A stretch of DNA of 39,926 bases from Fonticula alba ATCC 38817 (taxonomy: Eukaryota; Protista; Nucleariida): assembly GCA_000388065.2 (NCBI GenBank), contig KB932204.1. One strand, written 5' to 3'. Within the stretch, counting starts at the first letter, position 1, and each line of letters opens with the position of its first letter. This document shows, in pieces, positions 3,314 to 35,200 of the stretch. Made by a program: the position numbers and the translations under genes. A model generated the notes under the pieces. That model saw only the letters and a program-made list of their open reading frames with translations. It had not been told where the DNA came from and did not search any database.

Positions 3314-3921
3314 GATCCGCCTCTCGGCTCCCCTCTCCAAGGAACTTCACACCGAAAGTAGTGTGACACACCGGAAAGACCCTGCCAAATCCGCGCGCGT
3401 GGCGATCACCCCTCGATCACTCCCCCTCCCCCCGCACGGCCTCCTGGCGCTCTCGTCCCTTGGCACACCGTTCCCCCTGCCCTTTGTCCCCCCTCCCCCC
3501 CCCCTCCCCCTATCGTGCCTCCTTCTGTCCGGTATGACGCTGCGGCCCTGCCCATGCTTGATGCCTCCCCCTGCCCTGACTCCGAGGGAGTCCCGCGTAT
3601 TTCTAACCCGCGCCCCTGCCGCCCCTCCCCCGCCGGCCCGCGGNNNNNNNNNNNNNNNNNNNNNNNNNNNNNNNNNNNNNNNNNNNNNNNNNNNNNNNNN
3701 NNNNNNNNNNNNNNNNNNNNNNNNNNNNNNNNNNNNNNNNNNNNNNNNNNNNNNNNNNNNNNNNNNNNNNNNNNNNNNNNNNNNNNNNNNNNNNNNNNNN
3801 NNNNNNNNNNNNNNNNNNNNNNNNNNNNNNCCCCCCCCGTTCCCTCCCCCCGGTCGGCCCATGTCCGGCCGTGCCCCGGCCTGGGCCCCCGCCTGCCGCC
3901 CCCCAGGTGTCTGGCGGCCCC

Positions 3922-6900
3922 ATGTTTGCCAAGCCCACAAGCAGCGGGCGCGGCATGGTCCGCGCCCTAAGCCTGCCCCTGGCCGCGCTCTTCGTGCTGC
4001 TCTGCTCGGCCGCGGCCCTGCCCGTGCCGAAGGCCCACACCGCCGGGCGCCTGATCCTCAAGCGCCCCGGCGCCCAGGAGGCCATCGAGGTGGCCGGCAT
4101 CGTCTACCGCCCGGGCACCACCGAAATCCAGGCCGTCGGCACCGGCGGCCAGGCCCGCTTCGACCCGCCGACCGCCGGGGATTGCGGCCCCGGCTGCCAG
4201 ACATGCGTCCTGGTGACGGCCCCGCTGGACAGCGCCCTCGGCACCCAGGCCAGCCTCTCGGGCGATCGGCTGTTCACCCAGACCGCCGTGTGTACCGTGT
4301 GCGAGGCCGGGCTCTTCCGCGATGCCAAGGCGTCGGCCTGTGTGGCCCAGTGCCCGGACGGGTTCTTCGCTTCGGCGGAGCTCGGCCAGTGCCTGCCCTG
4401 CTGGCATGGCTGCGCCACCTGCAGCGGCCGCGAGCCCGGCCACTGCACCGGCTGCCCGGCCGGGCAGTTTTTGGTCAGCAACCGCTGCGTCGATGCCTGC
4501 CCGGAGACCACCTTCCCCCGGGGGACCATCTGCGATGCCTGCGATGATGCCCGGTGCGCCGAGGACCCGGAGATGCGGGCCGGCTGCCCGGCCGAGTGCC
4601 CGGCCCCGGCGGCCGATGAGGCCAACACCATCGGCACCGCCGCCGCCGCCGCCGCCGCCATCACCACCACCACCTACACCGGCCTCTGCGACACCACCTG
4701 CATGACCTGCTCCGGGCCGACGGCCGACGACTGCCTCACCTGCTTCACCAGCCTCCGGTGGCACATCGACCGGTGTGTCACCAACTGCCCGCTGGGCTAC
4801 TGGGACCGGATTTCCGACTACACCTGCCAGCCCTGCGCCCCGAATTGCACCCGGTGCACCGGCCCGGCGGCCAATCAGTGCACCGCCTGTACCGAGGGCC
4901 GCATCGTGGTCCCCAACCCGGGGAGCACCCTGGTCGGCCATTGCGATGTGTGCGCGGAAAATTGCTCCGAGTGTGCCAGCAGCACGGTCTGCCAGCGGTG
5001 CAAGCCCGGCTTCCGGTTCATCGACGGCCGCTGCTACCCCAGCTGCGAGCCCGGCTTCTACGAGTACACCGGCCCGAACACCGATTCCACCCCGCACTGC
5101 ATCCGCTGCCACGAGTCGTGCAAGAATTGCACCGGGCCCACCCCGGACGACTGCACCAGCTGTAACTGGGGCTTCCGCTTCTGGGATGGCATCTGCCAGT
5201 ATGGCGGCTGCACCGGCGAGAATGAGCACATGCACCTGACCGGCCACTGTGGCAATTGCGTGCCCCAGTGGTACTACTGCCCGGAGCTGGACCCGCCTCC
5301 CTTGATGGCCACCTACCCGCATGAGGTGCCCATCATCCCCATCTGCGATGGGCCCATCTGCTGGCATCCGGACGGCATTGCCCGGCCGAATCCCTACTGG
5401 CCCCCGGGCAGTGGCAATGGGCTGAGCATCAACAGTGCCAAGCCCCGGTCGGATGGCTCGGCCGCCGGCCAGCCCCCGGCCAAGACCCTGACCTACACCA
5501 TGACGGACTTCGCCCAGGTGGCCGATCCGCCGGCCGACCAGGCCCACACGGCCGGCAGCCCGGCCTCCGGCATCCACACGACATCCCCCTTTGCCGGGCC
5601 CCGGTCGATCGAGATCCAAATGGAGGATGCCAATGGGCTGCTGTACACGCCGGATGTGGTGGCCGCCAAGGCGGTCACCGCCCTGCTGGGCTCCGCGGCC
5701 GGCGCCTCGTCGGCCTCCTCCAACGACGGGGGGATCTCCATCTCGGCCATTCGCACCGACTCCGGGGTCAACCCGGATGACTGCTTCTGGATGTGCTGGG
5801 GCCTCTATGGGTTCGGGGGCATCCTCGATGGGAATGCCGCGCCCGGGGCCCAGCAAGTCGCCGACACCACCCCGAAGCTCAGTGCCAAGCAGATGCTGTC
5901 CAGCATGGCGGCGGCCAGCGCGCGCGGGACCCCCACCAGCGGCGGCCAGGTCAATGCCTTCGGCTGGTTCACCGACCCGGATGACAGTGTGCTGGCCTGC
6001 GCGGAATTCTGCGTCCCCATGCCGGAGCGCTGCCTGACCATGCTCTTCCCGCCGTTGAACTTGTGCTACCATTGCAACCTCGGCTGTGCCGAGGGCCACT
6101 CCACGTGCAAGCGCTCGGTCGGGCCGAATGCCGACCAGTGCCGCGAGTGCCCGGCCGGGCGTCTCATCCAGGAGACCTGGGTCCCGGGCCAGGGCGAGTG
6201 CGTCACCACATGCGCCAGCACCCACTTCCAGGTGGACAACATGTGCCGGCGCTGTGCGCCCCAGTGCCTGACCTGCGAGGACCGGGCCAACAACTGCACC
6301 GCCTGCAAGCCCGGCTTCCTGACCATGCCGGATGGCGCCTGCCGGACCCACTGCCCGGAGGGCTATCGCCAGGCGGCCGGCAACAAGTGCCTCAAGTGCG
6401 GCCCGCATGCCCTCAAGTGCGACCAGTACGGCGTGCTGGCCTGTGAGATCGGCTACGCCCCGCGGGCCGGCGAATGTGTCCCGACCACCTGCCCCAGCGG
6501 CTTCTTCTGGAGCATCGCCAACCGCATCTGCCGGCCCTGCCACGAGAGCTGCAACACCTGCCGCGGCCTGAATGCCGACCAGTGCATCACCTGCTCCGCC
6601 AGCCATCCCTACATGATTGACGGCCTGTGCCAGTCCGGCTGCCCGGCCGGGTGGTTCTGGCGCGAGGAGAACCAGCGCTGCGAGAAGTGTGTCTTCTGCG
6701 CCGAGTGCTTCATCAACCGCTTCAAGTGCTGCAAGTGCGTCCCCGGCGAGTACCTCTTCTACGAGCGGTGCTACATCAACTACGACAGCCACGACAGCAC
6801 CGCCATCTCCAACCCCCTGGACCCGAGCCCGAAGATGGACCTCTGCGATGAGACCTGCGCCTCGTGCTCGACCAGCGCCAAAATGTGCACCTCCTGCCAC

Positions 6901-7260
6901 CCGGGCTGGCGGCTGGTGTCCGGCACCGGGAGGTGCGTGCTCGGCGACTGCCCCGAGGGCCTGGTCCCCGGGGTCGACCTCTCCGGGCAGGATGTCTGCC
7001 GGCTGCCGGAGGAGAACTTCTGCCGGCTGGATGCCGGGTTCTATCGCGACCCGGAGAACTACGAGTGCCGGGCCTGCCCCGAGGGCTGCGGCATGTGCCA
7101 CCAGGCGGATGTCGGCCTGCCGGTTGTCTGCCTGGCCTGTGCCCCGGGCACGTACGCCCACCCGGTCCATGGCGCGGACAAGTGCCAGCCCTGCCACAAG
7201 ACCTGCGGCACGTGCAACGGCCCCGGGCCCAAGGGCTGCCTCACCCCCAGCAAGGCCTGA
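3922..7260 (+). CDS. Secreted cysteine-rich protein with furin-like (CxxC) repeats, ~1100 aa, single exon
   Basis: Long ORF with strong GC3 bias. N-terminus MVRALSLPLAALFVLLCSAAALP looks like a signal peptide (ATG 3922 or 3955). Many CxxCxxxCxxC-GP-xxxCxxC units (e.g. CHESCKNCTGPTPDDCTSC, CHKTCGTCNGPGPKGC). No C-terminal transmembrane helix before the stop. Confidence 0.85.
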   Translation: MFAKPTSSGRGMVRALSLPLAALFVLLCSAAALPVPKAHTAGRLILKRPGAQEAIEVAGIVYRPGTTEIQAVGTGGQARFDPPTAGDCGPGCQTCVLVTAPLDSALGTQASLSGDRLFTQTAVCTVCEAGLFRDAKASACVAQCPDGFFASAELGQCLPCWHGCATCSGREPGHCTGCPAGQFLVSNRCVDACPETTFPRGTICDACDDARCAEDPEMRAGCPAECPAPAADEANTIGTAAAAAAAITTTTYTGLCDTTCMTCSGPTADDCLTCFTSLRWHIDRCVTNCPLGYWDRISDYTCQPCAPNCTRCTGPAANQCTACTEGRIVVPNPGSTLVGHCDVCAENCSECASSTVCQRCKPGFRFIDGRCYPSCEPGFYEYTGPNTDSTPHCIRCHESCKNCTGPTPDDCTSCNWGFRFWDGICQYGGCTGENEHMHLTGHCGNCVPQWYYCPELDPPPLMATYPHEVPIIPICDGPICWHPDGIARPNPYWPPGSGNGLSINSAKPRSDGSAAGQPPAKTLTYTMTDFAQVADPPADQAHTAGSPASGIHTTSPFAGPRSIEIQMEDANGLLYTPDVVAAKAVTALLGSAAGASSASSNDGGISISAIRTDSGVNPDDCFWMCWGLYGFGGILDGNAAPGAQQVADTTPKLSAKQMLSSMAAASARGTPTSGGQVNAFGWFTDPDDSVLACAEFCVPMPERCLTMLFPPLNLCYHCNLGCAEGHSTCKRSVGPNADQCRECPAGRLIQETWVPGQGECVTTCASTHFQVDNMCRRCAPQCLTCEDRANNCTACKPGFLTMPDGACRTHCPEGYRQAAGNKCLKCGPHALKCDQYGVLACEIGYAPRAGECVPTTCPSGFFWSIANRICRPCHESCNTCRGLNADQCITCSASHPYMIDGLCQSGCPAGWFWREENQRCEKCVFCAECFINRFKCCKCVPGEYLFYERCYINYDSHDSTAISNPLDPSPKMDLCDETCASCSTSAKMCTSCHPGWRLVSGTGRCVLGDCPEGLVPGVDLSGQDVCRLPEENFCRLDAGFYRDPENYECRACPEGCGMCHQADVGLPVVCLACAPGTYAHPVHGADKCQPCHKTCGTCNGPGPKGCLTPSKA

Positions 7261-8486
7261 GCTCCGGCACCGGTGCCGGCGCCCGGCCGCCCCNNNNNNN
7301 NNNNNNNNNNNNNNNNNNNNNNNNNNNNNNNNNNNNNNNNNNNNNNNNNNNNNNNNNNNNNNNNNNNNNNNNNNNNNNNNNNNNNNNNNNNNNNNNNNNN
7401 NNNNNNNNNNNNNNNNNNNNNNNNNNNNNNNNNNNNNNNNNNNNNNNNNNNNNNNNNNNNNNNNNNNNNNNNNNNNNNNNNNNNNNNNNNNNNNNNNNNN
7501 NNNNNNNNNNNNNNNNNNNNNNNNNNNNNNNNNNNNNNNNNNNNNNNNNNNNNNNNNNNNNNNNNNNNNNNNNNNNNNNNNNNNNNNNNNNNNNNNNNNN
7601 NNNNNNNNNNNNNNNNNNNNNNNNNNNNNNNNNNNNNNNNNNNNNNNNNNNNNNNNNNNNNNNNNNNNNNNNNNNNNNNNNNNNNNNNNNNNNNNNNNNN
7701 NNNNNNNNNNNNNNNNNNNNNNNNNNNNNNNNNNNNNNNNNNNNNNNNNNNNNNNNNNNNNNNNNNNNNNNNNNNNNNNNNNNNNNNNNNNNNNNNNNNN
7801 NNNNNNNNNNNNNNNNNNNNNNNNNNNNNNNNNNNNNNNNNNNNNNNNNNNNNNNNNNNNNNNNNNNNNNNNNNNNNNNNNNNNNNNNNNNNNNNNNNNC
7901 CCCCCCCCCCCCCCCCCCGCTGCCCCTTGCTCCCTCGCCCAGCGAGAGCAGCCCTTGCTGCTGGGTGCTTGCCCTGTCCCGCCGCCCGGTATCCGCGGCC
8001 CCCTCCCCGTCTGGTTTTGTCCTGTTGATGTCCGAGCACGGGGAGTGGGGATGCCTTCCTAACCCACAGCGGTGATCGCGGCCAGCCGAACCGTCAGATG
8101 CACTTTGCCCTCGATTCCGCCGGCTTCCCCCTGGGGCCAGGGGGAGGCGAGCAGGCAGGGCGGACCCGCCGAGCCGGCCGCCCCCCAGTGGTGGGAGCTC
8201 TGCCCGAAAAAAAATATACACATGTCACACGAGTCCCAGATCACATCGCCCGCACAGAGTCCGTATGCATTGGCACCATTCACCAAGTGCCAACCCTCGC
8301 TCCGGCCTCATCAGCCGCCTGGGTGCCGGGGGGTGGGCCCCTCCTGTGTTTCGGTCCAGATGCCCTCGACACAATTTCCTCCCCCCCCCCCGCCCCACGC
8401 GCCGCCCCTCCTCCCCAATCGGTCTTTTCTCCCCTTCGCAAGATAGATCCCCTGGGATATTTTCGTGTTGGACCCTGCGCCCCGGC

Positions 8487-9980
8487 ATGTTCCTGACTGT
8501 GGCTGGTGGTGCCATTGGTCGCCCATTCACCCGGCTGCTGGCCGGGGCCCGATCCCCGGCCCTCGGTTTTTTGATACACGCGCCCTGTGCCGGCGAACGC
8601 GCCTCCGGGTTTTTCTCCACCACCGCCCCCACCACCCCCACCACCGGCGATGATTGGGAGAGGGCGGTTTCCCACCGGTGCTTGATGATCCTTTGCCACC
8701 CGGATATGCCCTTTCGCCTGACGGCCGGCCAGCTGGCCATGCTGCCCGAGGGCCCGAGCAAGGACCAGCTCCCGGCCTTCATGTCTCAAGTGCTGGACTT
8801 TGTCGCCCTGCATCCCTCCTTGGAGGCCATCCCCCTGTCGCCGCATGAGCGGGCATGGTGCCTACGGCATCTGCCCAACATCCGGCCCCGGGTGTCGCCC
8901 AAGAAATTGGCCCGCCTCCTGGGGGACAGCAACTTGCAGGACCTCCTCAAGAGGCCCACGCACTTCCGCCTTTCGGATGCCTACGCCAAGCGCTTCCGCC
9001 ATGTGGCCCTGGCGAACCCCTCCAAGAGCGGGGTCGAGCTGGCGGCCATGCTTGGCATCCCGGTGTCGACGTGCTTCTCCCACCTGAACCGCCTTTGCCC
9101 GGAGTACTTCGACCGGCGGGCCGCCTGGCGCCAGGGGCTCATCGACCAGCTGGGCGCCCTCCTCATCAACGAGCCCAACCTCTCGGACAAGGACCTGGCC
9201 CGGCGGCTGGACATCAAGCAGGAGACCCTGGTGGCGCTGATTGCCCGGCACTTTCCGACATACTCTCGCCGGCTGGGCCGCATGCAGAACCGGCAGAAGG
9301 AGCTGCTCGCCATCCTGGCCGCCCGGGCCGATCCTCCGCCCACCCAGCGGGAGCTGGCCCAGAGGCTCAATGTTTCGGTGTCCACCGTCTCCCGGATGTT
9401 GGCTCGGCTCGCGGCCACGCGCGCGGCATCGGCCGGGGAGGACGCCGCTCCCCCGGCGACGCCGCCGCCGCCGCCGGTCCCGGACACGTCGCCTTCGGCC
9501 GAGGCACCGCCGGCGCCCGCGCCGACGTCTGCCTCGTCAGCGCACCCCCCGGAGCCGGGCCACGACCTGGCGGCCGGGCCAGCCGCGGCGGCGGCGGCGC
9601 ACGAGGCCCCCATCGGCCGGGAGCCAGCAGCCCCGTCCCCTGCTCCGGGCAGGCTCGAGCGCCTGGAGGCCGTCATGCAGCATCAGGGCCCAGGCCTGTC
9701 GGTGGCCGAGTTGGCCACCGCTGCCGACCTGCCCAGGAGAGAGGTCACACAGCTCCTGGCCCGGCACTTTCCCTCGTACCTGCCTGCGCGGCCGCCGCGG
9801 ACCCCAGCCCGGCAGGCGGTCCAAGTGGCCCGGGTGGGCGAGCTCATCGCGGCCAATGTCCCGGTCCAGCAAATCCCCTCCAAGCTGGGCATCCCGCGTG
9901 AGACCTTCCGGCGGATATTGGACACTCACTATCCGGACTTTTCCCGGAGGCCATCCACCCCGCCCTCCGCGGAAGAATAG
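8487..9980 (+). CDS. Orphan protein with five tandem helix-turn-helix modules, possible mitochondrial presequence
   Basis: ORF with GC3 bias. HTH-like motifs SGVELAAMLGIPVSTCFSHLNRL, SDKDLARRLDIKQETLVALIARH, TQRELAQRLNVSVSTVSRMLARL, SVAELATAADLPRREVTQLLARH, PVQQIPSKLGIPRETFRRILDTH. Start at 8487 is preferred over 8265 but is uncertain. Confidence 0.75.
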   Translation: MFLTVAGGAIGRPFTRLLAGARSPALGFLIHAPCAGERASGFFSTTAPTTPTTGDDWERAVSHRCLMILCHPDMPFRLTAGQLAMLPEGPSKDQLPAFMSQVLDFVALHPSLEAIPLSPHERAWCLRHLPNIRPRVSPKKLARLLGDSNLQDLLKRPTHFRLSDAYAKRFRHVALANPSKSGVELAAMLGIPVSTCFSHLNRLCPEYFDRRAAWRQGLIDQLGALLINEPNLSDKDLARRLDIKQETLVALIARHFPTYSRRLGRMQNRQKELLAILAARADPPPTQRELAQRLNVSVSTVSRMLARLAATRAASAGEDAAPPATPPPPPVPDTSPSAEAPPAPAPTSASSAHPPEPGHDLAAGPAAAAAAHEAPIGREPAAPSPAPGRLERLEAVMQHQGPGLSVAELATAADLPRREVTQLLARHFPSYLPARPPRTPARQAVQVARVGELIAANVPVQQIPSKLGIPRETFRRILDTHYPDFSRRPSTPPSAEE

Positions 9981-10934
9981 ACCTGCCTTTCGGGGAGAGC
10001 TTTTCACCATGTTGTGGGAACGTCGTTGTCCGGCCCCGGCGGCCCGAGGGGAGGGGGCGGGGGACTGCCGGCACAAGGGCGCGCCGCGCGCACGCTTGAG
10101 AGCGCCCCCTCCCCTCCGGTCCGGTCACCGGCCCGGAGGAGGCCCAGATCGCCAAGCCCATGGTGCGCAGGGTCGCCCCGGACGCCGGTCCGCCGGCGGG
10201 AATCGGTCCCTCACCCCGCCGAGCCCGCGAGAGCGCGAGGCTCTCGATCCCACGTGCGACGAGATCACATGAGGACTCAATTATCTTTTGTGGCCCCCAC
10301 CCCAGGGCACTGCGCGGTTTCGTGCGATTCCGGGTCGCCCCCCCCTTGCTCCTGCTCGTCGTCCTTCGGCGCCTCTGTCGCCCTCGCTCTCGCCTGCCCA
10401 GCTTCCTGGTGTTTCTTCCGGGGCTTCTCCCGGCACTTTCTGTGTTGATGCAAGTGCATGCGTTTGCGACGGTCGTGGGGATGTGTGGCTGTCCCGGGGG
10501 TGGAGCGTTCCAGCGTTCCGGCGTTGCCCGCGCCCCGGGGGGGGGGGGCGGGACAACCACAGGAGGAGTCCACCGCCAAGCCCCTCGCGACCCTCACACG
10601 CAGGCCGCCGGTTTAATTTGGCCGGCGGCGTCTCGATCGCCGGCCAGTCACTCGGACCTTTCGACGGGGCCCCGCGGCCGCCCCGGCAGCAGGCCGATAT
10701 GCAATGGTGCGCACCCCCCCCCCCGGGAGCGGAGACAGCCGGCCCGGCCCTCCCCGGCCGGGCACAGAAGCGGCAAGTTTTTTTTTTTTTTTTTCAGATC
10801 CCGGTGCCGCGATCTCCCCCGGCCGCGAGACCGGTCACATCGCCTCCCCTCCTCCTCGCCTCCCCTCCTCCTCGCCTCCCCCCTCCCGCCCCCCCCTCTC
10901 TCTCTTTGCTCCCCCCTCGTCACTGGCCCCCATC

Positions 10935-12350
10935 ATGTCTCCCCGGGACCCCGACGCCGGGTCCATAGCCCCCGCCACGGCCTCCCCCTACTACCTTCGG
11001 CTGGACTTCTTCAGCGTCCTGATGGAGCTGCTGAATCTGGTGGTCAAGCTGGAGAACTCGTGCGCGGAGGCCATCGCCTCGGCCACCGAGCAGAATAAGG
11101 ACGTCTCGGTGGCATACACTGTCGGCACCACGGCCACCGTGGTGTCGGGGCTGCTGCTGCTAACCCCCCTGGCCCCCCTGGCGGCCGGGGTGCTGGTGGC
11201 ATCTGCGGCCACCACCCTCGGCACCGGCATCACGGACTTCGTCATGAACAAGAACCGCCAAAAGCAGATCATCGAATGGGCCGAGTCCCTGCGCGTGTGC
11301 TACCTGAATTACATCGAGTGCTCGCTGCTGGTGCAGCAGCACATGGGCCGCGTGCTTTTCCCGACCACGGCCGAGGTGGGGTCGCTGTCCAATCAGCAGC
11401 TCGGCCTGTGCCTGCTCCTGTCGCACGCCTTCCTCGGGCTGGATGCCACGGCCGAGGCCGGGCCGGCCCTGGACACGCTGCTGGGCGAGTGCCGGCGCCT
11501 GCATGCCCTCGGGCTGAAGCGCTCGCCACCGGCCGGCCCCCCGGCCGGGGAGGCCCTCACGCAGCCGGGCAGCCCCGGCACCGACATGTCCCTCGAGGTC
11601 CTCCTGCGTGGGCTGGCCATCGCGGCACACGAAGACCCGGCCATCGCCCTGGCGGCCCCGAGCCTGGCCGACACGGCGGCCGTCTACCAGGTGGACATCC
11701 TGCCGCGCGTGGCCCTGGTCCTGCTGCGCGTGGTCTTCCAATTTACGGAGCACCCCCTGCCGGGGGACTTGTCCACCGTCAACATGGACACCGTGACGGC
11801 CGACGCCCTGGTGGCGCTGCTGAATGCCGGCGAGGCGTCCAAAACCATGCTCCAGCGCTTTGACAGCAGTAACTTCACCCTCAGCGGGGGCCTCACCTCG
11901 GCGGCCATCATGGCCGGCCGACTGCTGACCCCCTACATGCTGGTGTTCGACGTGGTCAACTGCTTCCACTCCTGGAAGAAGGACCCCCCCACCCTGAAGT
12001 CCATCAAGGACCTGGGGGCCACGCTCACTGCCCTGCGCACCGACATCGACTCGCGCTATGGGGCCTTCCTCCAGCGCGATGTGGCCACCGGTGTCATCAG
12101 TGCGTGTGGCATCCGGCCTGCCGCCGTGGCCCCCTCGTGTTGCCCTCTCCCCTGTTGCCTGCTCCTTGCCCCGGGGTTGCTCCCCCCTCGCCCTCCTTTC
12201 TTCGGCCCTTTCCCCCCCCCCCCCCCCCGGTTGTGGGGCTCCTGTTCCATCGCACACTGACCGCCTCCCTTCCGCCTGCCCTTCCGACGGTTCGACCCAC
12301 GCGCATGTGCACGCATAGAAATCAACCTGCCAGTCGAGGAAGAGGAGTGA
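10935..12350 (+). CDS. Apolipoprotein L-like membrane protein, join(10935..12099,12319..12350)
   Basis: GC3-biased ORF with a hydrophobic hairpin (NKDVSVAYTVGTTATVVSGLLLLTPLAPLAAGVLVASAATTLGTGITDF) and C-terminal YMLVFDVVNCFHSW...TLKSIKDLGATL, both recalling ApoL motifs. A GTGCGT...TAG intron at 12100-12318 restores frame to KINLPVEEEE*. Gene is well supported; family assignment is moderate. Confidence 0.6.
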
Positions 12351-12563
12351 GTCTGCCTCTGGGGATCTTCCGTCCCCCGACACCGGCTGTCGGCCCCTGG
12401 GCGGGGTCCCACTCGGGCGCACACAAGGCCACGAACAAGCAGAGTGTATCAAATAAAAAAATGTGTTCCTATTTCCATGCATGCCGCCGCGGTCGGGCGT
12501 CAGGGCAGAGGCAGGGCCGAGGGGCCCATCCTCATCCTCAGGGTCGCCGTCGGCATTGCATGC

Positions 12564-12948
12564 TCATCCGAAGCGTGCCTTCTTTTGGGTGGTCGACGTG
12601 ACGGCCAAGGCAAGCGAGGCGGCCGTCTCGTAGCCTGTCAGGGAGGCCGCGCCAGAAGCATCGCCGGCCGGATCGCGAGTGTCCGCCGCTCGGAAGGACG
12701 AGTCCCCGGGGAGGTTGCGTTTGGCCGCGGCCGCGGCCGCGCCGCCCACCTCGCGTGATAAGGTGGATGCAGTTAGCCTGTTCAGGCCGCTGACACCGGC
12801 CGACTTGCGCCAATGCGAGGACATCGACGCGGCCCAGTATGCCAAGCGGAAGACTGTACGTCGGCGGGTCAGTGGTCAAGCTATCGGGCCAGATGGCCGT
12901 CTGTCGAGGAGGCATAGGCACGTGTGCTTGCACGCGTGCGTGTATGTG

Positions 12949-12984
<36 letters not shown>

Positions 12985-14115
12985 TGTATATATATGTGTG
13001 TGTGCATATATACATATATGTGTATGTGCATATATACACATATGTGTATGTACATATATACACATGTATGTATGGGTGTGCGTGCGCGCTTGGATGTGAA
13101 AGGAACGCACCCTCGCGCTCGCAGGCATCGAGCCTCTCCAGATCGGTCGACACGTCACGAGCCATGGCCCGATGGGCCGTGTGCAGGACATGCGACAGGC
13201 GCGAAGTGTAGGCCTTTGGGCCATTGAGACATGCGTATGGACAGCAGCGAAGAGGGACATCCCATCGAAGAGGCGTCAGAAGGACCGACGGGGCGGGAGG
13301 AGAGGAAGGGCCAGCAGCAGGGCGGGGCCGAAAGGGGAGCCTACTGAAAGGGGGGGGGGCCAGGCTGCCCTGTGGGCACGTACCTCGTGGAGCATCTCAC
13401 CCAGTGCATAATCCTGCTTCCTGCTCAGCAGCAACCGAATGGCGTCAGGGGCTCGGGAGCGGGCAACATGACAAAAGGGAAGAAGGGTGACATGGAGGAC
13501 GCACAGCGTGGCGATTTTCTGGCCCAGACGGAAGTATTGCCCACTGCCGCCACCCTCGACCGTGCGCAGATCAGCACCAACAGGGTCCGCCTTCAGTGCG
13601 GCTCCCGCGCGAGGCCCAAACGCACGTGGGACATTTGTCGTGACGACCATCCTAGGTGGGGTTAGGACGCGGGCGAATGAGAGGAGGGAGCAGCAGCGTG
13701 CATCCATGTGTTGTGTGCTTGTCTATGTGGGCGTATGTGTGTGTGTGTGCGTGTGTGGGCGAATGCGCGGGAATCGGCCGATGGCCGCACGTACTTGCTC
13801 TCCAGCCCCTGGGCCAACCAAAAGGGGATCTCAAACTGCTTGGTCTTTCGGTCAACCGGCTCACCAAGGCCAATCAGATGTAGATCCGACGAGCGCAGTC
13901 GGAGGCGCACCTGGCAGGTCACGCGCTGGAGGGGGTAAAAAAAAAAGAGCCCCAACAGCACAGGCCCCGCCATGGATATGGGTGAGCGCGTGGGCACGCG
14001 TGCGCGTGTCAGTGGCTTTGGAGGGATGGCAGAGGGGAAGCCAGCAGGTGCGCACCTCCTGTTCGGCGAGGATATCATCCAAATCATAGTAGTCGGGAGA
14101 GATGTGCTCTTCCAT
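12564..14115 (-). CDS. PSF3: GINS complex subunit Psf3, 6 exons: 14115-14056, 13910-13795, 13651-13505, 13420-13384, 13213-13111, 12853-12564
   Basis: Spliced product has YYDLDDILAEQE, FEIPFWLA, ALKADPVGADL, YFRLGQKI, LERLDACEREVFRLA, all typical Psf3 motifs. All introns GT-AG, phases consistent, total 753 nt. Confidence 0.9.
12918..13090. repeat. Alternating purine-pyrimidine compound microsatellite in Psf3 intron 5
   Basis: (GTGC)n followed by TATA/TGTG/CACA arrays, including about three copies of a ~24-bp unit like TGTGCATATATACACATATGTGTA. Confidence 0.85.
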
Positions 14116-16541: not shown

Positions 16542-16941
16542 CCNNNNNNNNNNNNNNNNNNNNNNNNNNNNNNNNNNNNNNNNNNNNNNNNNNNNNNNNN
16601 NNNNNNNNNNNNNNNNNNNNNNNNNNNNNNNNNNNNNNNNNNNNNNNNNNNNNNNNNNNNNNNNNNNNNNNNNNNNNNNNNNNNNNNNNNNNNNNNNNNN
16701 NNNNNNNNNNNNNNNNNNNNNNNNNNNNNNNNNNNNNNNNNNNNNNNNNNNNNNNNNNNNNNNNNNNNNNNNNNNNNNNNNNNNNNNNNNNNNNNNNNNN
16801 NNNNNNNNNNNNNNNNNNNNNNNNNNNNNNNNNNNNNNNNNNNNNNNNNNNNNNNNNNNNNCCCCCCCCCCCCCCCCCTTCAACCCAGTTCCGCCCCGCC
16901 CCAGGTCCCTAACATGTGTGCCGCATGGCCATCGTGCCCAG

Positions 16942-18138
16942 TCGCCCTCGGACATCCACCCCGTGGTGGTGACGGAAAATGGCGTCTTCAACTGTCGCTC
17001 CGGGGCCTTCATGCACCGGGAGCTGATCGGAAAGCGCTTTGGGTCCCGGGTGCGCGGGCGTGCTGGGACGCGCGGTGGCCGTGGCCAGGGCCGGCGCCAG
17101 GCCGCCGGCAAGGCCAACACCGGGGCCACCCCCGGCGGCGGCTGGGCCTACCTCCTGCACCCGAGCCCCGAGCTGTGGACCGTGTCGCTGCCGCACCGCA
17201 CCCAGATCCTCTATGTGGCGGACATTTCCTTCATCACCATGCAGCTGAACATCCAGCCCGGCAGTGTGGTGGTCGAGTCGGGCACCGGATCCGGGTCCTT
17301 CAGCCACTCGCTGGCACGCACGGTCGGCCCGACCGGGCACCTGCACACCTTCGAGTATCATGCCCAGCGTGCCGAGCTGGCGGCCGAGGAGTTTGCGCGC
17401 CATGGCCTGGCCGACCGGGCCACGGTGCGCTGCCGCGATGTCTGCGAGCTCGGCTTCACGGAGGAGCTTCGTGGCCAGGCGGACGCCGTCTTCCTGGACC
17501 TGCCGTCCCCCTGGCTGGCCATCGGCCACGCGCGGGATGCCCTCAACCCCCGGGTCCCCACGCGCCTGGCCTCCTATTCCCCCTGCATGGAGCAGGTCCA
17601 GCGGACCTGCCTGGCCCTGCGGGACCTCGGCTTCAGCGAGATCCGCACCTTCGAGACGCTGATCCGGCCACATGCCCTGCGCGGGGCGAGCCAGCGGTCT
17701 CTCGAGAGCCTGGCCCGCTATGGCACCCGCGAGCTGGCCGCCCTGGAGGAGGCCGGCGCTGACTCCGCCAACGCCGAGGCCGTGGCCGCCATCCAGCAGA
17801 AGCTCGACCTGAGCCGGGTCACCGCCGAGCAGGTGGCTCGCGAAACCCAAGTGTCCCTCGGGCCGCAGCTGGTCATGGGCCAGGAAATGCGCGGCCATAC
17901 CAGTTACCTGACCTTTGCCACCCTCTACCCGGGCCTGTGGTCCGAGGACGCGGCCGCCACCGCCGAGGAGGCTGTCGCTGGCGGCCCGGCCGAGAGCCAG
18001 CCATCGGCTGCTGTCCCGACCGAGGAGCAGCCTGCCCCGGAGCCTGCCGAGGGGGCTGCCACCGCGGCCGCCGCGGCCGCCGGGTCCCCCTCCCCCTCCT
18101 CCTCCTCGACCCCGGAGGCGGCCGACGCCTCGGAGTAG
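16942..18138 (+). CDS. TRM61: tRNA (adenine-58-N1)-methyltransferase catalytic subunit, 5'-partial (first exon probably in gap 16544-16861)
   Basis: Motifs LLHPSPELWTVSLPHRTQILY, VVESGTGSGSFSHSLARTVGPTGHLHTFEYH, DAVFLDLPSPW, SYSPCMEQVQRT, GHTSYLTFA. In-frame CAG acceptor at 16941. Confidence 0.95.
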   Translation, partial: SPSDIHPVVVTENGVFNCRSGAFMHRELIGKRFGSRVRGRAGTRGGRGQGRRQAAGKANTGATPGGGWAYLLHPSPELWTVSLPHRTQILYVADISFITMQLNIQPGSVVVESGTGSGSFSHSLARTVGPTGHLHTFEYHAQRAELAAEEFARHGLADRATVRCRDVCELGFTEELRGQADAVFLDLPSPWLAIGHARDALNPRVPTRLASYSPCMEQVQRTCLALRDLGFSEIRTFETLIRPHALRGASQRSLESLARYGTRELAALEEAGADSANAEAVAAIQQKLDLSRVTAEQVARETQVSLGPQLVMGQEMRGHTSYLTFATLYPGLWSEDAAATAEEAVAGGPAESQPSAAVPTEEQPAPEPAEGAATAAAAAAGSPSPSSSSTPEAADASE

Positions 18139-25118: not shown

Positions 25119-26299
25119 GCACCGGCGGACTTGGCCACACTTGATCCGGCGCGCGCACGCCCACATGCATTTCCCTTCCCCCCCCCCCCCCCCCGCAGGG
25201 CCCAACCCCTTTGATCCCTGTCCTTGTGCGGCATTCTTCCCCGGTCCTCCCCTTATTGGCCACGCGTTGCTCCGGAATGATCCCCGGCGGAGATGCCCCT
25301 CCCCCTCCCCTGTCCCCCGGTGGTTTTCACGCCCACCCACACACCCACAGGGCCCCCATATAGACGAACGGTTTCCCCCTCTCGCCTGCGCCGCTGCTGA
25401 CCGCGCCGCCTCCCCCACACGTCGTAGGGCTGTCTGCGCGTGCTGGCGGTCAAAAGGGAAAGAAGAAAAGGGAAAGGGGGAGACAGCGAGGGAGGCACAT
25501 GTCGGCAACAACCGCAGCAATGCCCGGCAGGGCGCGCGCGCAAGCACTGCATTTTAAGTGGGTACATTTTTGGCGCAAGGAAGGCAGGGGAGAAGCGAGA
25601 AAAGGGATAGTATAGGAGAGAAAAGGGGGGGGGGGGGGGGGGGGGCGGCATGCCTGGGGGGCGCGCTCCGCCGGCCCCCCGTGCCGCCTCCTGTGGGANN
25701 NNNNNNNNNNNNNNNNNNNNNNNNNNNNNNNNNNNNNNNNNNNNNNNNNNNNNNNNNNNNNNNNNNNNNNNNNNNNNNNNNNNNNNNNNNNNNNNNNNNN
25801 NNNNNNNNNNNNNNNNNNNNNNNNNNNNNNNNNNNNNNNNNNNNNNNNNNNNNNNNNNNNNNNNNNNNNNNNNNNNNNNNNNNNNNNNNNNNNNNNNNNN
25901 NNNNNNNNNNNNNNNNNNNNNNNNNNNNNNNNNNNNNNNNNNNNNNNNNNNNNNNNNNNNNNNNNNNNNNNNNNNNNNNNNNNNNNNNNNNNNNNNNNNN
26001 NNNNNNNNNNNNNNNNNNNNNNNNNNNNNNNNNNNNNNNNNNNNNNNNNNNNNNNNNNNNNNNNNNNNNNNNNNNNNNNNNNNNNNNNNNNNNNNNNNNN
26101 NNNNNNNNNNNNNNNNNNNNNNNNNNNNNNNNNNNNNNNNNNNNNNNNNNNNNNNNNNNNNNNNNNNNNNNNNNNNNNNNNNNNNNNNNNNNNNNNNNNN
26201 NNNNNNNNNNNNNNNNNNNNNNNNNNNNNNNNNNNNNNNNNNNNNNNNNNNNNNNNNNNNNNNNNNNNNNNNNNNNNNNNNNNNNNNNNNNNNNNNNNN

Positions 26300-26648: not shown

Positions 26649-29600
26649 GGGCGGGCAGAGAGAAAAGACAAAGGTCAGCCAATCGCATGCTGAAGAAGAG
26701 AAAGAGGCAGGGAGGCCGAAGGAAAAAGGGGCAAAAAGAGGCGGGCATCCACAGCCGGACAGGCACTTACCTGCGTCTCGCGGTCCTGGTCCTCCAGGAG
26801 GTTGAGGAAGGACGGCAGCAGCTCCAGCAGCGTGGGGATCACACCACGCGCGGTCAGGAGGTTCATCCCGGAGAAGGCGTAAATGAGCGACGTCTTGGCC
26901 AGCCAGTGGTAGGGGTCCGAGTGCGAGGGGGACCCGGGATGGCGGACCAGCGACGAGAGGCTGCGCGAGCCGGCCCCGCCGGAGAAGCCAGCGTCGAGGG
27001 CGGCCTCGGCATCCGCCTCGACCTCGGCATCGGCCTCGCTGGTGGCCCCGTGGCCCTCCTCATCGCCATCGTCGCCGTCATCCTCATCATCGTCATCATC
27101 ACCGGCGTCGTCTTCCTCGTCGACGCCATGGTGGCCGTCATCGGCCTCGGAGTCGGTGCCAGCCTCGTCACCGGACTCGATGTCCATGGCGCCATCGGCG
27201 GCCTCCGGGCCGCCATCGACATCCTCCTCGTCCTCCTCCAGGCCGTCAGTCATGTCGACGTCCCGGTCCAGGAGGATGGTTGCCTGGGCCGCGGCCTCGG
27301 CCGACGGGAAGAAGGCCTCATCCGCCACAACCAGGAGGATGGAATCGGGGTCGCCATCCGTCAGGGACCCCACCCCGGCCAGGGTGTCATTGTTGAGACG
27401 AGCACAGACGGCCGCCGTGTCGGTGGCGCCGGCGGCCGCCGCCGCCGCCGCCGCGTCGACATCGTCCGTGGCCCCCGGCGCATCAAGCGCCAGGACCATC
27501 GGGGTCCCCGGGGCCGAGGCCGAGGGGATCAGCTGCCGCAGGTGCTCCAGCGCCCGAGCCATGATCGACCCCACCTCGAACCGGACCCACTCCTCGCGCG
27601 GGAGCGAGGGGATGATGCAAACATTCTGCAAGATGTGCATGATCGAGCCAAGCTGGTCCCGGCACTGCCGGTACGGGTGGGCCATGTGCGGGAGCAGGGC
27701 CTTGGCGGTGGGCGCCGCAAAGCGCACCAGGCGCCAGGCCATGGCCGAGAAGAGGTTCAACTGGAGCTGGACCTTGCGCGCCTCGGAGAAGGAGTACCGC
27801 CGCGTGGTCTGCAGCTTCTCCGAAAGGATCAGATCAATGAGCCAGCGGACGCGACGAGGGTCCTGGTGCGACTGTGCGGGCGAAAGACCCACAGAGGGGG
27901 AGGGGGGGGGGGCCGGCGGCGGGGAGAAAAAAAAAGGCATGTTAGAGACGGCATGCATCGGGGCGTGTGCGCGTGTGTGCGTGCGGCAGCAAGGCAGCAC
28001 ACGAGGGGAAAGGGGGGGAGAAAAAAAAAAGGCCGGACAATGGCCCGAGGCGGAGGGAAGCCAGCTCTCGCACCATGCCATAGCTGATGGCGCTCCCCCA
28101 GTCGGCCACATTGTCGTGGTTCAGCGAGTCGAACACCTTCGCCAGCAGGGGCCGCAGCGTCCGGCGGAGGGTCTCCCGGTCGGCCGTGCCCCAGGCCCGG
28201 GACCCGCGCAGCACGCCGGCCACCAGCTCGCAGGACAGGCTCTGTGCGGCGCGGTCGTTGGTCTGCACGGCCAAGCGCCGCAGCGGGCCCAGAGCCCCGA
28301 GCCAGGCCGAGAGGCCGAAGTGCCGGAAGAGGGACTTCAGCAGGACATACACGGCGCTGTCGAAGTTGGCCTCGCCGGCGGCGGTGGTGCCGCTGCCGGC
28401 CCCGGCCCCGCCGTCGTCCTCATCGTCGAAGGTCCGGCCAATTTGCAGCAGCCCCAGGAGATCGTCCCAGAAGTTCGGGGCATTGACCAGGGCCGCCAGG
28501 GCCGCCAGGTTGGAGTGCGTCGACACCGACTCCCGCGAGTGGGTGCCATTGTACACGCGCACGCGCTTGGGCCACCGGAGCCACCCATGCGAGAGGGTGT
28601 CCACAAAGAGCTCGGTCGATGTGGTCGACTGGGCGATGAACCGCCGCGTCAGCTCCGCATGGCATGCGTCCGTCTTGAGGTGCGAGCTGAGGTCCAGCTC
28701 GAACTTGGCAGGCAGGGCCTGGATCTCCTGGGGTGGCCAGCGCCAAGGCGGACACATGGGGCAAGGGCAGAAGGGGACACAAGCACCGCAGGGGTTAGAC
28801 AGGCGGCCCGGGGGGGGGGAGGGGGGGGCAGAAAAAAAAAGGAGGGCCGGAAAAAGAGAGGCGCGCGAGAGCGGCAGTGCACTTACCTCGGCCGAGAGCG
28901 CCAGCGGGTCCACCAGCACACGGATGTCATCCACCACCGGGAGCGGCTGGCGCGCATGCGGCTTGGCCGAATAGAGCACCAACGACACCAGGTCGATGGC
29001 CAGCGACCGGGCCGACGGGTGATCCGACGACAGGGCCCGGTAGAACCAGTCCGACAGGTTGTTGCCGAAGGTGGCATCCGCTCGCACGCACATGGCCAGC
29101 GATTCGGCCGCATTGTTCTGCGTGTTCCAGTTCACCGGCCCCACCAGGCACTCGGAGAGCGAGGACACCAGGTTCTGGTAGACTCGGCGATCGGCCTCGA
29201 AGGAATGCTGCTTGGCTGGCACCGGCGTGGCCTTGCCCTCGAAGTCCAGCTGGAGCTTCTGCGCGAGGGCCAGGCCGCGCGACGTCGGCGCCACCCCGAG
29301 CGAGATGAAGTAGAAGCTCTCATTGAAGTTGTTGAACAGCTCCACGGACAGGTTCTGCACCGAGAGCTGTGACCGAGGCGGAGTGGCCCAGGGGGGCGGG
29401 GGCGGGGGCGAGGGGAGAAGAGCGGAGCCCAAGACAACCCCAGACCGGTGTGGCGAGGCGTGGATGCGGGTGTGGCGTGCGAGTGAGTCGAGGGAGCCCG
29501 AATGTGAGCGGGGGGGAAAAGCCCCGCCAAAGGGCGGGTGGCTGTGCACGAACCTTCTCGTCGAAGCGCGCTGAGCTGAAGTAGTTCATGAAGCGCGCCT

Positions 29601-30309
29601 GGAACTTCCAAGAGCGCAGGCAGAAGGACAGCATGCCGGTCTTCTTGATGGTATACAGCCCACCCTTGAGGGCGGTGATGTTGTTGGCGCCTGGGCGGGG
29701 GAGGGGGGGGGGACATATGTGAGCCATTGTAGATGAAAAAGGACATAGCTATCGAGGATCGGGGCACACGGAGCAAAAGCCTATGTGTAGAAGAGGGCAT
29801 TGGAGAAGGAGAGAGAGAGAAGGGGAGAGAGAGAGAGAAGGAGAGAGAGAGAGAGAGAGAGAAGGAGAGAGAGAGAGAGAAAGAGAGAAAGAGAAAGTAC
29901 CCTCGGTTTCCAGGATCTGGAAGACCCGGTTGAGACTCAGCAGACGCTGGCGAGGGAAGNNNNNNNNNNNNNNNNNNNNNNNNNNNNNNNNNNNNNNNNN
30001 NNNNNNNNNNNNNNNNNNNNNNNNNNNNNNNNNNNNNNNNNNNNNNNNNNNNNNNNNNNNNNNNNNNNNNNNNNNNNNNNNNNNNNNNNNNNNNNNNNNN
30101 NNNNNNNNNNNNNNNNNNNNNNNNNNNNNNNNNNNNNNNNNNNNNNNNNNNNNNNNNNNNNNNNNNNNNNNNNNNNNNNNNNNNNNNNNNNNNNNNNNNN
30201 NNNNNNNNNNNNNNNNNNNNNNNNNNNNNNNNNNNNNNNNNNNNNNNNNNNNNNNNNNNNNNNNNNNNNNNNNNNNNNNNNNNNNNNNNNNNNNNNNNNN
30301 NNNNNNNNN

Positions 30310-30343
<34 letters not shown>

Positions 30344-31185
30344 AAAGGAAAGAAGTCAGCGGGAGGGGAAGAAAGGGGCACAAGGACAGCAGAACCCGGG
30401 AGGGGATGACAAAGAAGTGGGAGGCCCGCGAAAGATAGCCAGCCCCAGGGAGAAACTGCCCCTCTTCCCTCCCCCGGAAGGGAGGCCAAGACAGCACACC
30501 CGGCCAACGCACCGAAGTTCGACCGGTTGCGGATCTTCGAGTCGCCGATCTTCAGCGACAAGCCGGTCTTCGACAGGCGCGGCGAGAGGACCGACCAATC
30601 GAGGATCAGGCGCCGGGGCGAGCACAGGCAAATCAAGGCGGCCAGCAACTTGCAGAAGTACTTGTAGGCCTTGATGTTGAAGTCCTGCCGAGACTCGGTG
30701 GTCTCGATGAGCCGCGCCCCGAGGGCGACAAGCCCCTCGTGCAGGGCCCGCATCTTCGGCAGGAACTCATGCCCCGGGGGGATGGCCTCGGGGATGAGCA
30801 GCGGCGCCCGGCGGAGGTACCGCATGTGGGGGCTCGTCATGTCCGGAGTCAGCTCGTCCACCGAGTCGGCCTCCACGTCGGACCCGTCGCCGGAGCCGGC
30901 CCCGCTGTCGCCATCCTCGCCCTCCTCCTCGTCGCAGGCGGCCGCATCGTCATCGGCGAAGGAGAGCGCCGGGTCGCCGGGCCCCGGAGGCGACTCGTCA
31001 TCGAGATCCCCACGAGCGAAGGCCTCGACGATGTCCCGGTAGGAGATGTCCTGCAGCGGCAGCCCGAGGACCGCATGCCGCAGGAAGATCAGCTGCCGGG
31101 TGATCTCCTGCCAATTGAGGCTGAGGGGGCGGCGAGGGGGAGGATGCGCAGACACAGGCAGGGACGGGGAAGGGGGACAGAACAA

Positions 31186-31223
<38 letters not shown>

Positions 31224-34200: not shown

Positions 34201-35200
34201 GTACCTGCGCGTGCGTGAGGNNNNNNNNNNNNNNNNNNNNNNNNNNNNNNNNNNNNNNNNNNNNNNNNNNNNNNNNNNNNNNNNNNNNNNNNNNNNNNNN
34301 NNNNNNNNNNNNNNNGGGGGGGGAGGGGGGGGGGCCGGCGGAAGTCACGGCACGCGGGGGGAGGGCGGGCGGGGAGCCGGGTGTGGCACGCACAGCCGAG
34401 CAACGCTCAGATAGTCGAGGATGCGCTTGAGGTGCTTCTCCGAGGCCAAATGGTAGGCCACGCGCGTCGGGGGGAAGAACGACCGACGCAGGTGCTCGAA
34501 GAGCGGGCGCCAGGGAAGCACCAGGCGCAGGGGCTGGAGCAGACCCGGGGCCAGGGAGCTCGACTTCCTGCGGAGAGACATCCGCGCGCAGGGCCAAAGA
34601 GTCAGTCAACCGGTCCGCGCCGGGGCGACAGAGCAGACACAGACCAAGAGAGAGAGAGAGAGAGAGAAGCAAACGCGCGGCAGGGAGCCGAGCAAAGGGG
34701 GGGCGGCGCACTTGAGCAGACGAAGCAGAAGCGTGGCCACGGCCGACTGGGTGGCCGAGTCGAGGCCCGGATACACGAGCACCTCATGCAGGAGGGTGAT
34801 GATGCGGGCGCGCTCGGTCGGCGAGATCAGGTACTTGAGGTTCAGGTACCTGCACAGCAGCCCCCGGGCGGCGGGGCAATGTCAGACAGCGTGGCTGGGA
34901 GGGCGGCCGGCGGGGGAGCACGCGAAAAGGGCGACACCAAAGGGAGGCAACGGACTGGTTGACCGAACGGCAGGCGGCGCCGATGGACCGCGAGGACGGC
35001 GCGAGGGCCGCCTCGGCCAGCAGGCCGACGATGGCACGGAAGCGCTCCTCCGCTTCGGCCTCCAGACGATCATGGTCCAGCGGCAGATTGAAGTTGTAGA
35101 TGTCCACCCGGCTGGCCGGCGGCTGGGACCCGGGCAGCTGGGACACGTCCGTCGGCTCGGGGAGGACCGACGACGCGGGCGGGGCCCGGACAAGGGACAT
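26300..35200 (-). CDS. PSME4: Proteasome activator PA200/Blm10, at least 13 exons, 3' end in gap 25699-26299
   Basis: N-terminus IYNFNLPLDHDRLEAE, LVLPWRPLFE, LEPFMHPSNTGRW, LPGIDMNDPSKT, GGLYTIK, DPRRVRW are PA200 motifs. Approximate exons: 35200-34956, 34849-34712, 34567-34394, 34204-33034, 32842-32609, 32152-31304, 31107-30513, (gap)-29901, 29690-29554, 29366-28887, 28727-28074, 27871-26771, 26455-(gap). Confidence 0.9.
32340..32497. repeat. Intronic A-rich minisatellite, ~14-bp unit CAGC(A/G)(A/G)GAAAAA(A/G)A
   Basis: About 11 degenerate copies, alternating into a ~28-bp higher-order unit AAGAAAAAGACAGCGAGAAAAAAACAGC; preceded by GAAAGAGGG repeats at 32205-32335. Confidence 0.85.

Follow-up and report, generated by a model that had tools for sequence, protein, structure and literature searches.

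An expressed Fonticula alba protein with an apolipoprotein L-like build, grouped by profile comparison with a small family that includes sea anemone proteins

The gene H696_02588, which occupies positions 10935-12350 on the plus strand of a 39,926-nt stretch of Fonticula alba DNA (contig KB932204.1; hereafter the window, numbered from its first letter), is a genuine, expressed, single-copy gene with two exons, and its 398-aa product is placed by profile comparison in a small, previously unnamed family that includes proteins of a sea anemone. The segments of this product follow one another in the order known from apolipoprotein L (ApoL), and we are inclined, on balance, to read it as a remote variant of the ApoL superfamily, a divergent branch that would lack the N-terminal bundle and carry an insert of about 200 aa, although it is not assigned, on the profile evidence given below, as a member of the Pfam ApoL family (PF05461). 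New here are the expression of a protein so far annotated as hypothetical, its place in a small family in common with a cnidarian, and its ApoL-like build; a literature search brought up neither a link between ApoL and Fonticula nor the locus tag H696_02588.

The encoded protein is 100% identical to the NCBI record 'hypothetical protein H696_02588 [Fonticula alba]', which was retrieved by a word-based protein search and sits on a 3.07-Mb scaffold; this identity bears out the preliminary description of the DNA, made from its letters alone, in which the source was taken to be a non-animal opisthokont. The span proposed there for the coding region runs exactly from ATG to stop, but the intron that it includes had been placed one base off: the coding sequence is 10935-12099 joined to 12319-12350, and the ATG at 10935 (+) is the first one carried by the transcript. 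The gene is laid out as follows:

10895..10934, plus strand: 5′ untranslated leader; transcript contigs start at 10895-10912
10935..12099, plus strand: exon 1, codons 1-388 and base 1 of codon 389, from the sequence and transcript contigs
12100..12318, plus strand: intron of 219 nt, GT..AG, with the joint 12099->12319 in all four runs
12319..12350, plus strand: coding part of exon 2, from transcript contigs; final ten residues, including four Glu (12336-12347), and stop (12348-12350)
12351..12561, plus strand: 3′ untranslated region, with contig ends lying at 12363-12561

Transcript evidence consists of contigs assembled from four public runs, made on two samples within a single study, and shows presence and splicing. 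The contigs cover 10895/10912-12099, leave out precisely the 219 nt bounded by GT..AG, and resume at 12319, running on to 12471/12561. Because they span the spliced joint, the gene is transcribed and spliced as modeled, and, because they cover the long middle part of the reading frame without a break, that part is not an unrecognized intron. The leader is preceded by a C/T-rich tract and a T-run, and the 3′ untranslated region contains an A-rich, AATAAA-like stretch at ~12452-12462. A second set of transcript contigs, at 12467-12854, starts within or beside this region and leaves window-like sequence at 12854, with a further loose end at 12724; it could represent a neighboring transcript, possibly overlapping or spliced. 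An antisense open reading frame (ORF) of 440 codons at 11160-12482 (minus strand), lying over the gene, was dismissed as a GC-driven artifact on the grounds of its composition and of the spliced plus-strand transcripts. The gene itself is ~68% GC, with a third-position GC content (GC3) of 0.85 in its frame, and the window is GC-rich eukaryotic DNA (~65-72% GC outside nine runs of N); these runs account for 2,962 bases (e.g. 1551-1910, 7294-7899 and 25699-26299) and leave H696_02588 untouched. No paralog was found in the Fonticula genome by either a protein search or a profile search.

Relatives of the protein (denoted P0001) are few. An exhaustive HMMER/phmmer search of 1.84 billion (1.84e9) cluster representatives yielded a single other protein, the 254-aa P0002, matched in two stretches with an E value of 4.7e-6, and a word-based search with P0001 returned only P0001 itself. 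BLASTP aligned P0001 and P0002 in two colinear matches, one at residues 29-109 (35% identity), spanning a lead-in helix, a hairpin and the first part of the helix that follows, and the other at residues 336-353, at the end of a late helix. Used as a query, P0002 led to nine relatives, seven to eight of which come from ENA metagenome and Logan assemblies, on long, gene-poor, eukaryotic-looking contigs of 31-38% GC, and one of which, matched at E 6e-16, is named: LOC116300796 of the sea anemone Actinia tenebrosa. P0002-P0010 together with LOC116300796 form the set of ten relatives. The Actinia homolog is present as two tandem copies, 97% identical, at 3385-4668 and 10001-11269 of WAHB01000510.1, each with one intron after codon 58; of the genes next to them, one resembles a calcium homeostasis modulator gene and another is for a BK-type potassium channel. 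A search with the family alignment added zero further members, and neither an IMG/VR scan nor a JGI metagenome scan turned up any; the members seen come only from Fonticula, one sea anemone and eukaryote-like contigs.

The test of membership was a hidden Markov model (HMM) profile built from the ten non-Fonticula proteins only, against which P0001 was scored. It reached 56.9 bits, divided between two domains that follow in order: the first aligned residues 25-118 with profile positions 12-105 (45 bits), the second residues 320-360 with positions 193-235 (9.8 bits). By comparison, 9,000 composition-preserving shuffles of P0001 attained a maximum of 21.8 bits (3,000 global shuffles, 8.3; 3,000 in 20-residue windows, 15.8; 3,000 in 10-residue windows, 21.8), and the reversed sequence scored 0.5. 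Judged by these scores, the two blocks are a genuine family signature, beyond chance, and by the same measure H696_02588 is a member of the family. The ORF and the two sequence blocks originally quoted from it are indeed present (residues 54-111 and 327-371 of 398), and the blocks, which had been said to keep the same order as in an animal protein, prove to be precisely the parts conserved in the animal-type family.

The ~250-aa proteins (P0002-P0010 and LOC116300796) are true homologs, having in common with P0001 the two colinear blocks, a Thr-Pro-Leu-Ala turn, an Asp and the Trp, Pro and Thr of a signature motif, even though overall identity of the Fonticula protein to the family is only 21-28% (28% to P0002). 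Columns invariant among nine aligned sequences are the Gln, Val and Thr of the lead-in helix, the Leu and Thr of the turn, the post-hairpin Asp, and the signature Trp, Pro and Thr. The Fonticula protein is ~145 aa longer than the other family members owing to its middle insert. P0007 and P0009, found as Logan/ENA transcripts, differ in carrying, in place of this insert, a 184-aa N-terminal extension that has no Pfam match and starts with Met-Gly-Thr-Ser-Ile-Ser; their Met-Gly start is a possible N-myristoylation site, which would fit a membrane-directed protein.

The H696_02588 product is a 42-kDa, acidic protein (isoelectric point 4.9), predicted to be all-helical, with the following segments:

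Residues 1-18: polar and acidic, read from the sequence
Residues 19-57: single long amphipathic helix before the hairpin, from the model and the sequence
11007..11288, plus strand, residues 25-118: conserved N-block, comprising lead-in helix, hairpin and next helix; the 45-bit match to the profile
11106..11234, plus strand, residues 58-100: hydrophobic helix-turn-helix hairpin, from hydropathy and composition
11289..11891, plus strand, residues 119-319: helical middle region with no family match
11511..11579, plus strand, residues 193-215: Pro/Gly-rich linker in the insert, modeled as coil
11676..11747, plus strand, residues 248-271: third hydrophobic helix, hydropathy ~1.6, from hydropathy and the model
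11892..11981, plus strand, residues 320-349: late (fourth) hydrophobic helix, within the conserved C-block
11970..11993, plus strand, residues 346-353: signature Ser-Trp-x-x-Asp/Asn-Pro-Thr at the late-helix end, from the family alignment
11988..12089, plus strand, residues 352-385: zipper-like C-terminal amphipathic helix, from the model and hydrophobic spacing
Residues 395-398: tail of four Glu, from the sequence

Since the N-terminus, as read from the sequence and not from a predictor, shows no signal-peptide-like hydrophobic start, the protein is probably cytosolic. The lead-in helix carries the family-conserved Gln-x-x-x-Val-x-x-x-x-Thr positions. Within the hairpin, hydropathy rises to 2.06, charged residues are entirely absent, Gly, Pro, Ser and Thr make up 44% of the residues and Ile and Val 16%, and the turn reads Thr-Pro-Leu-Ala-Pro; helices are predicted on both of its flanks, and an invariant Asp (D101) directly follows it. 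The middle region, of ~200 aa, exceeds its counterpart in the ~250-aa relatives by ~110 residues, and residues 115-320 matched no Pfam family; helix 248-271, which lies in it, is a possible third membrane helix. On the late helix, Asp339, Asn342 and Ser346 are spaced at i, i+3 and i+7 and share one face; this helix is the candidate for lining a pore, and its end is marked by Trp347, Pro352 and Thr353, all invariant in the family. Hydrophobic residues of the C-terminal helix recur at intervals of 3-4 (L354, I357, L360, L364, L367, I371, Y375 and F378). A homodimer prediction for residues 315-398 gave a score of 0.01, which we take as evidence neither for nor against self-association.

The nearest neighbors of the protein in a language-model space point to ApoL. 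The ESM-Atlas feature search, an alignment-free method of lead grade, ranked ApoL clusters first for P0001, with a score of 0.95 and 211 of 256 features shared; ApoL-bearing clusters made up 42 of the 100 nearest, and the ten best family-bearing hits all agreed. ApoL also came first for P0002, at 0.95 with 207 of 256 features shared, and again accounted for 42 of 100 hits. According to the calibration supplied with the tool, a value of 0.95 is reached by about one in 100 shuffled proteins, and at least 170 shared features occur in 9 of 10 true family members versus 1-2 of 10 chance or distant hits. In the matched clusters, which are from arthropods, mollusks and nematodes, PF05461 is carried by only 21-70% of members, indicating that the Pfam model is insensitive to many invertebrate ApoL-like proteins; its silence therefore counts as weak negative evidence.

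A series of observations weighs against ApoL kinship. At E<=10, PF05461 (gathering score 25.9 bits) gave no match to any of the 11 proteins of the family, which, given that HMMER filters hide weak matches, means no match better than E ~0.1, and it was equally silent on residues 25-125 and 300-398 of P0001 taken alone and on the halves of the relatives. A six-frame PF05461 scan of the whole Fonticula genome also missed H696_02588. Conversely, the family profile found none of the APOL chains in the PDB. AlphaFold2 models had a mean predicted local distance difference test (pLDDT) value of ~40 for both P0001 (9-row alignment) and P0002 (10-row alignment), and a Foldseek search of the PDB and a shape search of the ESM Atlas with these low-confidence models retrieved only insignificant, generic helical bundles. 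The recognition value of P0002 in the Atlas, 1924, is too low for a high score to be taken as strong, and this weakens the P0002 result. The late-helix Asp occurs three residues further on in most relatives than Asp339, so that it occupies no fixed column, and only ~57 residues precede the hairpin (~45 in the short relatives), too few for the ApoL four-helix bundle. Finally, what the language model picks up may be a common style, that of a flexible hairpin plus amphipathic helices, rather than ancestry. The Atlas's own model of P0001 had a pLDDT of 0.46 and gave template modeling (TM) scores of <=0.36; with models of such low confidence, the structure-search results were discarded as evidence. 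The sole PF05461 match in the genome scan (G000:C3:450938-451222, minus strand; 14.9 bits, E 0.2) was set aside as chance; it falls in an unrelated 551-aa ORF without a hairpin, the N-terminal half of which is coiled-coil-like and which contains His/Pro/Thr repeats. The initial proposal of an ApoL-like protein thus stands as regards the nearest language-model family and the anatomical order; the match to PF05461 by which it was to be checked did not materialize in P0001, in its pieces, in the ten relatives or at the gene in the genome scan.

These observations would also fit a convergent hairpin-anchored protein, monotopic in an organelle membrane or in the monolayer of a lipid droplet, whose helices scaffold or bind partners, with neither a pore nor ApoL ancestry. 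The resemblance would then be that of generic Gly/Ala/Thr-rich hydrophobic helices, in keeping with the missing HMM match, and the hairpin draws equally weak matches from DUF677, VIT1, the RTX N-terminal domain, SseC, DUF6861, MotA/ExbB and the latrotoxin N-terminus; as these are many unrelated membrane families, it is evidently composition that attracts the matches. A central Pro-x-x-Pro turn and an interior free of charges, both found here, are typical of monotopic hairpins. Convergence would not, however, readily account for the fact that two divergent members, P0001 and P0002, each find ApoL first and share over 200 of the 256 features with it, nor for conservation that extends beyond the hairpin, to the polar lead-in, the post-hairpin Asp and the distant Ser-Trp..Pro-Thr helix end; the overall order and spacing, moreover, fit the published APOL anatomy (PMC8446801). 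We therefore regard convergence as a serious but somewhat unlikely explanation.

It is far harder to see in the protein a relative of the bacterial alpha-helical pore-forming toxins of the ClyA/Hbl/Nhe type, whose elongated helical bundle bears a hydrophobic hairpin as its head, in place of an ApoL relative. The sea anemone member does weakly match NheB (NCBIfam, E 0.0019, residues 19-149 versus 178-312), and Foldseek listed ClyA, HblL1 and YaxAB with E values of 0.35-1.9. Such matches are, however, far under thresholds (17 bits where the cut-off is 500), the Foldseek rows are meaningless for a low-confidence model, P0001 itself shows no such match, and the language-model neighbors are ApoL and not ClyA-type families, all of which makes this relationship highly improbable.

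If the protein is indeed a divergent ApoL relative, its route into Fonticula bears on the age of the family. An ApoL-type permeabilizing effector may already have been present in the ancestor of animals and fungi (Opisthokonta), and may have been kept in the bacterivorous Fonticula as a cell-autonomous means of attacking bacteria, whether ingested or invading, or as a regulated factor in membrane rupture or death; we offer this scenario as a rather doubtful one. Alternatively, and compatibly with ApoL kinship, the gene could have been acquired horizontally from an animal or via a large DNA virus and have diverged since, in which case it would be uninformative on a pre-metazoan origin. The distribution is very patchy, with relatives reached only through the bridging P0002; no named relative from fungi, choanoflagellates, filastereans or ichthyosporeans appeared in the relative searches; Fonticula has no paralog; and ApoL genes do travel in viruses, since a PF05461 gene has been reported in the algal virus TsV-N1 (PMC4517135). 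On the other hand, base composition and GC3 are host-like, the intron is of the host type and the neighbors are housekeeping genes; the nearest relative is only ~28-35% identical, so that any transfer would have to be ancient; patchiness is common in fast-evolving families of the immune type; and IMG/VR yielded no viral relative. Transfer thus seems distinctly unlikely.

The housekeeping neighbors, which mark the locus as an ordinary native chromosomal one, are the gene for the tRNA m1A methyltransferase subunit GCD14/Trm61 at 16864-18135 (+; E 1e-90) and several exons of the proteasome activator PSME4/Blm10 at 26678-34218 (minus strand). The upstream neighbor, at 8076-9977 (+), is a long GC3-rich frame for a helix-turn-helix repeat protein with strong matches of the bacterial-style winged-helix/MarR type (HTH_24, 3e-15; MarR_2, 2e-14). 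Farther upstream, a 1,142-codon open frame at 3832-7257 (+) contains a furin-like Cys-rich repeat and a Giardia-VSP-like match (E ~7e-8) and probably codes for a large Cys-rich surface or secreted protein. Downstream of the gene, a CA/ACGC-type microsatellite tract at ~12880-13170 gives rise to ORFs that are long but spurious, in several frames of either strand.

On the basis of its anatomy and of the APOL literature, the protein is proposed to act as follows. Its soluble state would be one in which the amphipathic helices shield the uncharged, flexible hairpin of ~43 residues, rich in Gly, Ser, Thr and Pro, and the hairpin would insert on meeting a target membrane. As the hairpin has no acidic residue, insertion should not need acid pH, in the manner of APOL3-5 rather than of APOL1/2. 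The bilayer might then be crossed or lined by the late hydrophobic helix, in which an Asp (D339) lies buried, and the heptad helix might gather further copies by self-association, the outcome being leakage of ions (cations) or remodeling or disruption of the membrane. Targets could be bacteria reaching the cytosol, phagosomal or lysosomal membranes approached from the cytosol, mitochondria, or, as part of a death programme, membranes of the cell itself; that it is simply a lysin of the phagosome lumen is less likely, to judge from the missing signal peptide.

APOL proteins are major factors in human innate immunity and kidney disease, and a confirmed relationship would have several consequences. 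A minimal, bundle-less relative present in single copy in an amoeba and a 250-aa version in an animal would provide an outgroup for the ancestral core, i.e. the hairpin, the Asp-bearing helix and the zipper, and a culturable amoeba would be a simple system for asking whether bacterial killing was ancestral. Were the opisthokont-ancestor scenario correct, ApoL immunity would be far older than the vertebrate origin usually given. Should the ApoL link fail, there would still be a new conserved family of eukaryotic hairpin proteins, with two named lineages so far.

Other known families were compared and set aside. The plant DUF677/UPF0496 family (PF05055) is matched by three relatives at its positions 156-263, below threshold (E 2.8e-4 to 0.04), with the matches spanning the lead-in helix, the hairpin and the next helix; it was rejected, as the best relative scored 20.3 bits against a 29.1-bit cut-off, and neither P0001 nor the Fonticula genome gave a match. 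A 60-residue match of the late helix to COP9 signalosome subunit 8 (PCI), at E 0.013, was not reproduced by the family profile and is ascribed to chance. TacA1, VIT1, YxiF, SseC and the RTX N-terminal domain, as well as the latrotoxin N-terminus, NheB, LeoBC, ZorA and PDC-M09A, were dropped as being sub-threshold or composition-driven.

Likeness to the APOLs was judged from their published anatomy and not from an alignment to an APOL sequence. Like the ApoL family (in humans APOL1-6 and APOLD1), the Fonticula protein is all-helical by prediction and of similar size. APOLs possess a transmembrane hairpin rich in beta-branched residues and in Gly/Pro/Ser/Thr, long flanking helices, a second helical region and a C-terminal zipper (PMC13177371); in APOL1 these include the MID at residues 177-228, the PLR at 335-356, where D348, Y351 and E355 point to the same side, and the ZIP, residues 368-395 (PMC8446801), D348 being conserved in APOL1-6 (PMC8358165). 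The Fonticula protein shows a comparable succession of an uncharged hairpin, a candidate pore-lining late helix with an Asp (D339) and a zipper-like amphipathic helix with hydrophobic residues at 3-4 spacing, and residues 58-100 resemble the ApoL hairpin in composition, absence of charge and helical flanks. In the short relatives, such as the 254-aa P0002, the distance from the hairpin to the late helix is ~110 residues, as in APOL1.

Several features set the protein apart from the APOLs. Their hairpin is preceded by a bundle of four helices at the N-terminus with an adjacent BH3-like motif (PMC13177371, PMC12248542), for which the Fonticula protein has too short an N-terminus. It further differs in its lack of a significant PF05461 match, in its middle region of ~200 aa with a Pro/Gly linker, in the family-specific Ser-Trp..Asp/Asn-Pro-Thr motif and in its own EEEE tail. 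The host, a holomycotan amoeba, likewise contrasts with the origin of APOLs, which is placed in early vertebrates (PMC8557400, PMC12248542). In its hairpin the protein recalls APOL3, an intracellular APOL that is bactericidal and remodels membranes: in APOL3-5, lack of charge in the MID accompanies neutral-pH insertion (PMC8358165), and the Fonticula hairpin also has no acidic residues, with a composition that fits the "flexible fusogenic hairpin" of APOL3 (PMC13177371), in a protein that is probably cytosolic. The missing signal peptide is in line with all APOLs except APOL1, the only secreted isoform (PMC13177371). The core mechanism of the APOLs themselves is disputed between ion channel activity and membrane remodeling (PMC13177371).

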